In this document: piece after piece, positions 9,463 through 13,527 of the stretch
Layout of the letters: each line of letters begins with the position of its first letter
Numbering within the stretch: position 1 is the stretch's first letter
Virus record (IMG/VR): IMGVR_UViG_3300027759_004177
Coordinates: 186,001 to 250,000 of that record
DNA: 64,000 nucleotides
Direction: 5' to 3' (one strand)
The notes under the pieces: generated by a model
Database searches by the model: none
The model's input: only the letters and a program-made list of their open reading frames with translations
Told to the model about the DNA's origin: nothing
Translations under genes and position numbers: made by a program

Positions 9463-9538
9463 TGGTGCCCTGGGTAGGATTCGAACCCACAATGTCCGCT
9501 CGGTAAAGCGGTGACTATACCATTTTGTCTACCAGGGT
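9463..9538 (-). tRNA. tRNA-like gene, undetermined identity (6-nt anticodon loop TTACCG, A1/C72 mismatch)
   Basis: ACCCTGG acceptor, D arm, CCGCT/AGCGG stem, GTTCGAATC T-loop, CCA end. Confidence 0.75.
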
Positions 9539-10572: not shown

Positions 10573-10656
10573 TGGTGGAGAACACTGGGATCGAACCAGT
10601 CGTGCCATAGGCGCCGGATTTACAGTCCAGTGCATCACCATTGATGCTTCTTCTCC
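10573..10656 (-). tRNA. tRNA-Tyr (GTA)
   Basis: Loop CTGTAAA, long variable arm, CCA. Confidence 0.92.
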
Positions 10657-10662
10657 AAAACT

Positions 10663-10739
10663 TGGCGGAGTAGACGGGACTCGAACCCGCGACCCTCGGC
10701 GTGACAGGCCGATATTCTAACCAACTGAACTACCACTCC
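10663..10739 (-). tRNA. tRNA-Asp (GTC)
   Basis: GGAG acceptor, loop CTGTCAC, CCA. Confidence 0.92.
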
Positions 10740-10748
10740 AATACTACT

Positions 10749-10777
10749 ATTATACATTAAACGGATTTAATGGTCAA
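10749..10777 (-). promoter_or_regulatory. Sigma70-type promoter of the tRNA array
   Basis: TTGACC-17nt-TATAAT ending 9 nt upstream of tRNA-Asp. Confidence 0.8.
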
Positions 10778-10847
10778 TACTTACTGCTTATCGTAGATTG
10801 TTTGCCCAAAAAACGTACCAGTCATTTTCATGACCTCGAGCCATTTA

Positions 10848-11015
10848 TCAGTGTGAGGGGTATTTCAACCCCCTTGCAGAATTCTTTGCTGTTGCAAGTT
10901 CTGCCAACGCTTTTATTTGTGCTTCTACTCTTGCTACCTTTGCTTCTAGTAACGCCGCTTTATCTTCCGGTGAGAGGACAAAATGCGAAAACTCTTTTTT
11001 AATTTTGCGTTCCAT
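10848..11015 (-). CDS. 55-aa hypothetical protein (amphipathic/coiled-coil) downstream of the attenuator
   Basis: SD AAGGAG before ATG at 11015; MERKIKKEFSHFVLSPEDKAALLEAKVARVEAQIKALAELATAKNSARGLKYPSH. Confidence 0.7.
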   Translation of the reverse strand: MERKIKKEFSHFVLSPEDKAALLEAKVARVEAQIKALAELATAKNSARGLKYPSH

Positions 11016-11033
11016 TTGCTTCTCCTTTATAAA

Positions 11034-11067
11034 CAAAAAACCCCGGAGTGTTTAATTCCAGGGTTTT
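11034..11067 (-). terminator. Intrinsic terminator (attenuator)
   Basis: ACCCTGGA-ATTAAACAC-TCCGGGGT followed by a U-run. Confidence 0.8.
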
Positions 11068-11106
11068 GGTTAAAATACGGTAATATGTATGTCTATCCAA
11101 CACCCT
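11060..11106 (-). promoter_or_regulatory. Predicted antiterminator hairpin, mutually exclusive with the terminator
   Basis: AGGGTGTTGG-A-TAGA-C-ATAC [loop] GTAT-TTTA-A-CCAAAACCCT; the 3' arm takes up the terminator's 5' arm (AAAACCCT). Confidence 0.7.
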
Positions 11107-11200
11107 TCAAGTGCTCTAAATTGCGATCAAGCCAACGGCCTAGCACACACAGCACTACGGTCGCATAAATTTCATGAAGGTAATTTTTCATTGTTTTCAT
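11093..11200 (-). CDS. Putative 35-aa leader peptide (not in ORF track)
   Basis: MKTMKNYLHEIYATVVLCVLGRWLDRNLEHLKGVG*; second ATG at 11191; last codons overlap the antiterminator arm. Confidence 0.6.
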   Translation of the reverse strand: MKTMKNYLHEIYATVVLCVLGRWLDRNLEHLKGVG

Positions 11201-11229
11201 ATTATACAATTATTTATCTTTATTGTCAA
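11201..11229 (-). promoter_or_regulatory. Perfect sigma70 consensus promoter with an embedded TAAATA late core
   Basis: TTGACA-17nt-TATAAT; TAAATA at 11211-11216 inside the spacer. Confidence 0.85.
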
Positions 11230-11232
11230 CCT

Positions 11233-11529
11233 CTAGGCTGACATAATAGCGATAGTGCTTTTAACAAACCTATATTTGGCAACAAAGGCATTGATAAAAC
11301 TGATCCATTCTTCGGCGGCAGATTGATCAGTGAACAGCCTAGTCGATATCAATGATGAACCTTTGCTCTCAACCATCGTATCTGCGGACATTTTGCCAAC
11401 GGCAATCATTTCCGCAGTCTTTGCATCTAATTCGGCTAACGCTACAGAATCATTTTCATTTCTATCGTTTGGATTCGAGTTAATATAATTATCTCTTTGC
11501 CAGGTAATTTTAACTTTTTTTGTGTACAT
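11233..11529 (-). CDS. Hypothetical protein
   Basis: 98-aa ORF starting 3 nt after the upstream stop. Confidence 0.65.
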   Translation of the reverse strand: MYTKKVKITWQRDNYINSNPNDRNENDSVALAELDAKTAEMIAVGKMSADTMVESKGSSLISTRLFTDQSAAEEWISFINAFVAKYRFVKSTIAIMSA

Positions 11530-11532
11530 ATT

Positions 11533-12021
11533 TTAAGCCTTTTTAATCTTGTCAATCAAACCAGGTGAAAATGTTGGTTCAAACTTTTCATAAACTGCTT
11601 GAGCTTTATGTTTCCACTCAGCTGTTTCTTCTTTGGAAAGTTCAATAACATCAATACCATCAGCAACCAATTGCTGTTTGGCATCTTCACCATCCTGGAT
11701 CGTGACTTCACGTTCTCTACGTCCTGCTTTGATAGCAGCATCCTTGATCACGGCTTGAACCTCGGGACTCAATGTCTTCCAGAAGTCGTCACGCATGATC
11801 ATGGTTGTCAAAAACAAACTGTGCTTTGAGTCAATCACGCTTTTGGTAACGTCATTCTGCTTCAAGGGATAGATACGACTGTAAACAGTTTCTCCACCTT
11901 CGCAATCACCTTCGATGATGTGGGCACGAGTGTCTTCGGTTTCACAAACAAACACGTCGACACCACCCAAGACCTTGAATGTTTCTTGTGCCACTGGATT
12001 ACGATTGGTTCTTAGCTTCAT
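11533..12021 (-). CDS. TRAP substrate-binding protein (DctP-like), C-terminal half
   Basis: MKLR...ETFKVLGG, H-S-L-F, FWKTLSPEVQAVIKDAA, LVADGIDVIELSKEE typical of DctP C-terminus. Confidence 0.8.
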   Translation of the reverse strand: MKLRTNRNPVAQETFKVLGGVDVFVCETEDTRAHIIEGDCEGGETVYSRIYPLKQNDVTKSVIDSKHSLFLTTMIMRDDFWKTLSPEVQAVIKDAAIKAGRREREVTIQDGEDAKQQLVADGIDVIELSKEETAEWKHKAQAVYEKFEPTFSPGLIDKIKKA

Positions 12022-12488
12022 TTCTTGCCTAGATCATCTAGACCAGAGACTGGCTTGTCAACAATAATGTTACGGAAACCGCCTGAGTAAGTGAATGCCA
12101 TACCGCGAACATTGGACTTTTCAGTGATCTTCTCTAATAGACCTTCGCCAACTTCACCTTCTAGCACACGGGTTGCATGGTCGTGATCTTCAAAAATAAA
12201 TGGCATTTCTAGGGCTAACATATCGTGCTCAATATCTTCGGCCAACCATGTGGTGTACATTTGGCTCATTTCAATCTTGCCTTGTTCCATTAGATCTAGC
12301 AAATCGTGTTTAGTAACCAACACACCGTCGTTGTACTTCATGCTGTACTCGCTTAGTGTCATAACTTCAACTTCGATCTTTTCTGCACTTTGAGCTTCGT
12401 TTACAAAACGCTGAAAGTCTTCTGCTGCACGTACAAATAGGCTTAGTGGCTCGTGAGCAATTACCCAACGAATTTTAGTAGTTTTCAT
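12018..12488 (-). CDS. TRAP substrate-binding protein (DctP-like), N-terminal half, no signal peptide
   Basis: LEMPFIFEDHDHATRVLEGEVG, SGGFRNI, DDL; SD AAGGA before ATG 12488; ATGA overlap with the C-terminal half. Confidence 0.8.
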   Translation of the reverse strand: MKTTKIRWVIAHEPLSLFVRAAEDFQRFVNEAQSAEKIEVEVMTLSEYSMKYNDGVLVTKHDLLDLMEQGKIEMSQMYTTWLAEDIEHDMLALEMPFIFEDHDHATRVLEGEVGEGLLEKITEKSNVRGMAFTYSGGFRNIIVDKPVSGLDDLGKK

Positions 12489-12513
12489 GTGTATTTCCTT
12501 TATAATTTTTTTG

Positions 12514-12592
12514 GCGGCGTTCCGGTGTAACACACCGGTAAAAGGGTTTGCTACCCTAGGCGTCTGACGTCAACTGAATGTCGGCGTTGCTA
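12514..12592 (-). ncRNA. Candidate structured cis-regulatory leader RNA
   Basis: Between TAAATA (12597-12602) and SD: hairpins AGGGT-AGCAA-ACCCT and CCGGTGT-GTT-ACACCGG, ACGCC three times. Confidence 0.4.
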
Positions 12593-12612
12593 CAATTATT
12601 TAGCTTTTTGTT

Positions 12613-13527
12613 TTATTTGTCCAGTTTAACTGTAGCACTCAAACGGCGCCATAACACCAGCTGACTGTTGTACCAGTTGTCTAGCTCAGAATCTGGAATT
12701 TGATTGTTAGGAATACAAGTATCTGCGGCATTGGCATCACGTACACTTTTGCTACGTGCAGCTTCTACAAAAATCTTGCGAATTTCACGAAACTTTTCTT
12801 CAGGAAATTTGCGTGGAATAAAGATCTGTTGCGAGCTACTCATGTCTGCAATTGCCGGTGCAAATCCTTGATTTTTCAACAAGGGAATACCTTTAATACT
12901 TTCTTTGCCGGTCATGCCCAACCAATAAACCCGTTTGGTAGCGTCTGGCTTTGTGTACTGCTCGCTATCGCCAATGAATCCCACAGCAAAATCAGTTTGC
13001 CCACCCAAGACATTTAACAATGCTTCGTTGGTGCTTTTAAACGGAACAATCTGCATGTTTGGATATTGTGCAGCCACTTGCAAGGCTACCAGGTGCGTGG
13101 TTGCCCCAAGTCCACTGATACCAATGTTTAACTTGGCGTTTCGAGGAACATCCTTCCATGTTTTATACTTTGTGCTTGTGATAACAAACGGTGCAATACA
13201 CATGGGCATTAGGCTTCTAAAGTCGGCCATGTTATGACTTTCCGTTGGAAACAGGTTGGGACGGATAAATCCTGCCGAACTGTTGATCCAGATTGAGTTG
13301 GGAGTGTTTAACACATGGTTGGCTGCAACTGTGCCACCAGCACCAGGTTTGGCATCAAATACAAATGTGTATTTGCTTTGAAGTTTGTTGCTTTCATCAG
13401 CAAGTGTGCGATAGAAGTTTGCTGCTGTGTCTGCTGGCGACCAAGAATAAAACATAGTTACTGTTTCTTTCTGCGCCATGGCAGATAAACTGACCATGGT
13501 TAATAGTGTGGCTAATAATCGTTTCAT
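12613..13527 (-). CDS. Tripartite tricarboxylate transporter (Bug/TctC) substrate-binding protein
   Basis: Signal peptide; KPGAGGTVAANHV, SGLGATTHL, VPFKS...VLGGQTD. Confidence 0.88.
   Translation of the reverse strand: MKRLLATLLTMVSLSAMAQKETVTMFYSWSPADTAANFYRTLADESNKLQSKYTFVFDAKPGAGGTVAANHVLNTPNSIWINSSAGFIRPNLFPTESHNMADFRSLMPMCIAPFVITSTKYKTWKDVPRNAKLNIGISGLGATTHLVALQVAAQYPNMQIVPFKSTNEALLNVLGGQTDFAVGFIGDSEQYTKPDATKRVYWLGMTGKESIKGIPLLKNQGFAPAIADMSSSQQIFIPRKFPEEKFREIRKIFVEAARSKSVRDANAADTCIPNNQIPDSELDNWYNSQLVLWRRLSATVKLDK

Follow-up and report, generated by a model that had tools for sequence, protein, structure and literature searches.

The window analysed here is a 64,000-nucleotide stretch of a 356,865-bp uncultivated viral contig, a jumbo myovirus with tail sheath and terminase genes, whose terminase is 53% identical to those of Pseudomonas phage PA5oct and relatives, the nearest isolates by this gene. 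Read on the minus strand, the region begins with a sigma-70-type promoter (11229–11201) comprising TTGACA (11229–11224), a 17-nt spacer that holds TAAATA (11216–11211), and TATAAT (11206–11201), which is the only 12/12 match between 9 and 17 kb; promoter-like hits in general were no more frequent than in shuffled sequence. The promoter is followed by a 35-codon ORF (11200–11093) ending at TAG (11095–11093). The first ATG directly abuts the −10 box and is probably not in the transcript, whereas a second in-frame ATG (11191), 9 nt after the −10 box, is the likelier start and gives 32 aa, with the transcript probably starting about 3 nt before it. No Shine–Dalgarno precedes the ORF, and its start is therefore of the leaderless type. 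The last four codons and the stop form the 5′ arm (11106–11087) of an imperfect 17-bp hairpin (−14.5 kcal mol−1; loop 11086–11079, 3′ arm 11078–11060), which contains a G·A mismatch. An intrinsic terminator (11067–11031; −14.9 kcal mol−1) overlaps it, with 5′ arm AAAACCCTGGA (11067–11057), a 9-nt loop (11056–11048), 3′ arm TCCGGGGTTTT (11047–11037) and a T6-G-T3 tract to 11031, sharing 8 nt (11067–11060) with the 3′ arm of the hairpin; its stem has 11 bp and a GC core. A simple terminator scan missed it because of the 9-nt loop.

Directly behind the terminator lie a Shine–Dalgarno sequence, AAGGAG (11027–11022), and a 55-aa ORF (11015–10848), followed by a second promoter (10777–10749; TTGACC, 17-nt spacer, TATAAT; 11/12 match) immediately in front of an array of six tRNAs (10739–10247; Asp, Tyr, Glu, Gly, Cys and Trp) identified by ARAGORN, with Rfam adding the tRNA-Tyr at 10656–10576. 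The −35 box of this second promoter is degraded to CCGACC in a 98.4%-identical relative (locus L003). The original prediction placed the promoter, ORF, hairpin and terminator exactly where we find them, and gave the exact peptide; the observation is confirmed. In the window alone, however, the folding signal is modest (z = −2.1 and −2.3), and the terminator-containing fold is favoured (−23.7 against −16.9 kcal mol−1).

Conservation in close relatives and in a wider family

We then investigated whether this arrangement occurs elsewhere. A blastn search of cultured phages with 10700–11600 hit only the tRNA-Asp, and tblastn searches with the 55-aa ORF and with the 98-aa ORF upstream of the element found nothing; no isolate was found to carry the element. 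The exact terminator pattern was absent from GTDB genomes, sampled as one genome per bacterial or archaeal species, and Rfam gave no match other than tRNAs at E ≤ 1 in 9–13 kb or at gathering score in the whole window. The upstream 98-aa ORF has 26 homologues at 53–93% identity, and their contigs yielded ten distinct versions of the region. In all ten, both promoter hexamers are invariant while the spacer varies at constant length, the ORF keeps its start, frame, length and stop, and the hairpin and terminator are kept, although the upstream gene is only about 55–65% identical. Variable columns by codon position (9/3/14) and a dN/dS of 0.20 indicate that the ORF evolves like a translated gene, and the untranslated stretch after the stop diverges far less (p = 0.06) than synonymous sites in the ORF (dS = 0.31), so that the RNA itself is also constrained. 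The hairpin remains paired in 97.8% of cells in these relatives, but with only one compensatory change, and 48 of 500 shuffles reached the observed score; variation at this depth was too small to be significant on its own. An RNAalifold analysis that included the promoter gave a meaningless fold.

A search of viral contigs with the terminator sequence gave 18 loci, and a looser pattern gave 50, most with entirely different leader peptides of 19–48 aa that fall into 15 clusters at 50% identity. The layout is nevertheless the same: a promoter of the form GGTTGACA ... ATAAATA ... TA(T/C)AAT, an ATG 6–11 nt after the −10 box with no Shine–Dalgarno, a long hairpin containing the stop codon, and an overlapping terminator. 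Of 65 distinct family promoters, 62 score at least 11/12, 63 have a 17-nt spacer and 60 contain TAAATA. Since this search presupposed the terminator, we repeated the sampling through the downstream protein, using a subset of its alignment; this gave 56 loci, 40 of them distinct, and all 40 have a promoter, a Trp-containing leader and a terminator, the latter with stem and loop variants that keep the stem. An apparently invariant terminator loop in the first sample was thus partly an artefact of the search pattern, and an apparently conserved UAG stop was likewise not general, as other subfamilies use TAA or TGA. In total the architecture occurs in more than 80 distinct uncultivated phage sequences (the close relatives and more than 70 further diverged ones), once per contig, with a single copy in the window at up to 3 mismatches and one covariance-model hit per locus.

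A covariance model built on the hairpin structure aligned 62 distinct sequences. For the hairpin, 90.4% of cells are paired and 16 of 18 pairs show compensatory changes (157 cells), with a covariation score of 0.370 against 0.156 ± 0.009 in shuffles (0 of 500 reached it) and at most 0.057 when partners were slid. For the terminator, 98.8% of cells are paired and 6 of 11 pairs show compensatory changes (0 of 500 shuffles). The alignment was fitted to the structure by the model and the sequences are related to one another, so these values are not probabilities, yet the margins are large. These results refute a chance juxtaposition of promoter, ORF and terminator in an AT-rich intergenic region, for which only the modest folding scores and the background frequency of promoter-like hits could be cited.

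Two exclusive folds and the leader reading frame

The hairpin and the terminator exclude each other, as 6–11 nt of the terminator 5′ arm are used by the hairpin, and across the family their energies are nearly equal (ddG(AT − T) = +0.33 ± 3.0 kcal mol−1); the full-leader MFE is the terminator fold in 25 elements and the antiterminator fold in 15. The stop codon starts 9–14 nt (mode 11) from the hairpin base in 40 of 43 elements, whatever the sequence, and 8–16 nt in 34 of 40 protein-anchored loci, a placement in which a terminating ribosome would mask the 5′ arm. The window copy may be a weak switch, as its terminator state is favoured by 4–5 kcal mol−1. Predicted barriers for refolding from hairpin to terminator are low (3.8–10.3 kcal mol−1, with the lowest value, about 3.8, in the window), and the terminator might displace the hairpin even without a ribosome, above all in the window. 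We found no conserved anti-antiterminator or pause hairpin: in nascent-RNA folds on average 5.3 of 12 arm nucleotides pair with upstream ORF sequence, but not consistently.

The leader frame is kept at 19–53 codons, and dN/dS is 0.2–0.45 in five subfamilies, from which translation is inferred. Such values mean that the peptide sequence itself is under moderate purifying selection, which a purely codon-sensing leader would not need, and the peptide may have a role of its own. A free-standing small-protein gene, with the 32–35 aa peptide as the product, a partly leaky terminator, constitutive read-through and a hairpin that only shapes the 3′ end or stability of the mRNA, is consistent with this selection, with the conserved residues (Trp, often Cys), with subfamily motifs such as PQPN...LW.IC and NSIPGDPG, and with gene callers annotating the ORF in some contigs. 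We consider it unlikely, since a 3′-end stabiliser does not need to exclude the terminator, yet the overlap is kept through covariation, the stop sits at a fixed depth, and the two folds are nearly equal in energy. Moreover, peptides differ almost completely between subfamilies, have no common physico-chemical character and match no Pfam or PHROG family. A type I toxin or membrane peptide was also rejected, because only the window subfamily has a hydrophobic core.

Alternatively, the terminated leader of about 165 nt could itself be a trans-acting small RNA, possibly with a dual function as for the attenuator-derived rnTrpL of Sinorhizobium (PMC6614838), with downstream read-through secondary. 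A strong promoter followed by a terminator would give a discrete short transcript, and the non-coding 3′ part is highly conserved; however, no target or seed was identified, the variable hairpin sequence argues against a conserved seed, and genes with a Shine–Dalgarno start 20 nt after the T tract and in some loci have no other promoter. This reading is very unlikely.

Downstream genes, the Trp codon and interpretation

About 20 nt after the T tract there is nearly always a Shine–Dalgarno and a 52–59 aa ORF of one conserved family with at least 1808 cluster representatives in metagenomes and no relative in Pfam, PHROGs or PDB. AlphaFold predicts a single helix for the 55-aa protein (residues 16–51, mean pLDDT 79). 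A switch set by a factor, for example this protein or an RNA binding the terminator hairpin or the antiterminator, with the ribosome incidental, would account for a stem-loop, including much of its A-rich 9-nt loop (AAYTAAACAC), that is far better conserved than an ordinary terminator needs, even in the protein-anchored sample, and for the protein gene being almost always the next gene, which suggests a feedback loop. This too is improbable on present evidence: it does not explain the conserved open frame, the leaderless start spacing or the fixed stop position, one subgroup lacks the 57-aa gene but keeps the element, the predicted single helix is no known RNA-binding fold, and loop conservation was partly an ascertainment effect.

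The element always sits upstream of tRNA genes and points toward them. In four relatives (loci L041, L046, L053 and L063) the first tRNA starts 7–10 nt after the 57-aa ORF, and in the type represented by locus L071 a tRNA-Gly starts 34 nt after the terminator, leaving no room for another promoter, so those tRNAs can only be transcribed through the terminator. In the window family and several others a consensus promoter sits immediately before the tRNAs; in the window the attenuator would therefore govern the 55-aa ORF directly and add to tRNA transcription. Several relatives have a terminator immediately upstream of the element's promoter, indicating that the leader starts its own transcription unit.

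The original prediction further proposed that the leader, having codons for all six downstream tRNAs, is a general sensor of uncharged host tRNAs or of their cleavage by anti-phage anticodon nucleases; overall, its interpretation is only partly supported, in that the attenuator geometry holds and is conserved, while the six-tRNA argument is weak. A random 34-mer of this phage's composition meets that criterion with P about 0.05, and family-wide the excess of leader residues served by locus tRNAs is small (0.49 against 0.435, Wilcoxon p = 0.017, in samples that are not phylogenetically independent). The link to nucleases or defence has no evidence here and remains speculation. The conserved feature is instead a single Trp codon, often with one Cys and without any codon run, present in 14 of 15 leader clusters and 40 of 40 protein-anchored loci against about 0.39 expected per peptide. 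In the window it is W23 (11134–11132), 28 nt 5′ of the antiterminator base, and across the family it lies 24–64 nt upstream of the hairpin base, so that a ribosome stalled there would leave the hairpin free. tRNA-Trp is the tRNA most often found downstream (32 of 47 elements within 6 kb), is never found upstream, and is the first tRNA in about 12 distinct elements; the one leader type without Trp, that of locus L071, precedes an array in which no tRNA-Trp was found. As the sequences are related, this association is suggestive rather than proven.

Taken together, our best reading, to which we assign a probability of about 0.65, is a ribosome-coupled transcription attenuator belonging to a large family that has not been described. 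The analysis shows a strong host-type promoter placed to start a transcript at or within a few bases of the leader AUG, an RNA that can form either the hairpin, with the stop about 11 nt inside its 5′ arm, or the overlapping terminator, and the near-equal energy of these folds across the family. The behaviour of the ribosome and its effect on read-through, in contrast, are inferred from sequence alone. A ribosome that keeps pace with RNA polymerase and reaches the last codons or the stop would unwind and cover the 5′ arm, the terminator would form, and transcription would stop after about 165 nt; a ribosome that starts late or stalls earlier, most plausibly at the Trp codon, would leave the hairpin intact, and polymerase would read on into the ~55-aa protein gene and the tRNAs. 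Poor translation would thereby raise expression of the phage's own tRNAs, and good translation would shut it down.

A more specific and tentative possibility is that the Trp codon is the sensor of a feedback loop in which tRNA-Trp, often the first gene after the switch, and its neighbours are switched on when ribosomes stall for lack of charged tRNA-Trp, as could happen when host tRNAs decay or are cleaved during infection; one Trp codon is, however, a weak sensor compared with the codon runs of classical leaders. This would be the first case of tRNA genes regulated by ribosome stalling at their cognate codon, and the first leader-peptide attenuator family known in viruses. In a further variant, the selected peptide would act as a nascent-chain arrest or ligand sensor. 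Large phages carry tRNA arrays, but how and when these are expressed is almost unknown; a conserved translation-sensing switch of about 200 nt at their head would show that phages monitor the host's translation machinery and supply tRNAs on demand, that leader-peptide attenuation extends to viruses and to RNA genes, and that a large uncharacterised ~57-aa protein family is linked to that circuit.

Comparison with known systems

Full-text literature searches found no description of an attenuator in front of phage tRNA arrays. The element resembles the leader-peptide attenuators of enterobacterial amino-acid operons (trpL, hisL, pheL, leuL, thrL, ilvL) and of pheST (pheM) in its promoter-proximal short ORF, its intrinsic terminator in front of the regulated genes, and its mutually exclusive antiterminator whose 5′ arm lies at the end of the ORF, so that a ribosome at the stop would favour the terminator; pheM shows that translation-apparatus genes can be controlled in this way. 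It differs from these in having one conserved Trp codon instead of a run, a leaderless-type start instead of a Shine–Dalgarno, no demonstrable 1:2 pause or anti-antiterminator hairpin, a peptide under purifying selection, tRNAs and an unknown 55-aa protein as targets rather than biosynthetic enzymes, and a phage origin. In the polycysteine leaderless short-ORF attenuators of mycobacteria (Canestrari et al., bioRxiv 10.1101/834739), a leaderless short ORF is likewise the first cistron and ribosome position selects between alternative RNA structures, but those act on translation through Cys-codon runs, whereas here the alternative structure is an intrinsic terminator, the leader has a single Trp codon, sometimes with one Cys, and the context is a phage tRNA cluster.

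T-box riboswitches would match in logic, as a terminator/antiterminator switch that raises expression of translation-related genes when a tRNA is not adequately charged, yet they bind the uncharged tRNA directly through a specifier loop and have no leader ORF, and neither the T-box (RF00230) nor any other Rfam family except tRNAs matched in the searches above. Regulatory arrest peptides such as TnaC and SecM are also short leaders of conserved sequence, and in the window and several subfamilies the Trp lies 11–12 residues before the C-terminus, resembling Trp12–Pro24 of TnaC; however, the Trp-to-stop distance ranges from 12 to 26 codons across the family, so that no fixed tunnel geometry exists, C-terminal residues differ between subfamilies, no arrest motif is shared, and the control point is an intrinsic terminator rather than Rho. 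Finally, the PeSL (promoter-early stem-loop) cassettes of T4-type phages are stereotyped early-promoter and stem-loop modules in the plastic regions of large myovirus genomes, but they are multi-copy recombination cassettes in the order terminator then promoter, whereas this element is single-copy per contig, has the order promoter, ORF, switch, and covaries like a functional RNA.

The gene behind the terminator and its non-coding replacement

The 55-aa ORF behind the terminator (window 10848-11015, minus strand) belongs to a very large uncharacterised phage family of at least 1808 cluster representatives, with no Pfam, PHROG or PDB relative, and is predicted to be one long helix (residues 16-51). 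In one subgroup of loci, the 57-aa ORF between terminator and first tRNA is replaced by a conserved non-coding stretch of about 180-245 nt (relative loci L054:4672-4851, plus strand; L060:2876-3063, minus strand; L070:4730-4916, minus strand; L080:1803-1998, minus strand; L083:11271-11477, plus strand; and L068:4640-4885, minus strand). This stretch is predicted to fold into several helices, with 42 predicted pairs, of which 13 show compensatory changes in six sequences. It has no Rfam match, and is a candidate new structured RNA.

We also compared the window with L003 (3270-3790), a relative 98.4% identical to it. All 14 substitutions fall after codon 25 of the 55-aa ORF and in the spacer before the tRNAs, and the −35 box of the tRNA-array promoter is CCGACC instead of TTGACC; whereas, the attenuator is 100% identical.

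tRNA and tmRNA genes around the element

The tRNA-Tyr of the array (window 10576-10656, minus strand) was missed by ARAGORN and found only by Rfam, at a low score of 35.3 bits. At window 9463-9538 (minus strand), ARAGORN called a tRNA with an abnormal two-base anticodon ('ac'), which Rfam scored as a tRNA at 41 bits; this gene may be an odd or degenerate tRNA. In many relatives (L036, L037, L038, L040, L046, L048, L053, L055, L059, L062 and others), phage-encoded tmRNA genes and a tRNA-Met lie 1-3.5 kb upstream of the element, but none was found in this window.

Upstream genes and promoter spacer

Upstream of the element (window 11533-13527, minus strand, and relatives L024-L035) lie phage-borne solute-binding protein genes, consisting of one TctC/Bug-like gene and two or three short DctP-like ORFs, followed by a conserved 98-aa ORF of unknown function. 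Synteny is kept in relatives. However, some relatives that carry the 98-aa gene (L021:838-1359, L034:2800-3316, L010 and L033) lack the element at this position and have other genes there, for example a 169-aa ORF on the opposite strand, indicating that the module's position relative to that gene is not fixed.

Within the promoter itself, a TAAATA/ATAAATA motif (window 11211-11216, minus strand, and family promoters) is conserved in the spacer in 60 of 65 distinct promoters, 9-12 nt upstream of the start of the −10 box, while the rest of the spacer varies. This motif could be a second, late-type promoter core or another promoter element.
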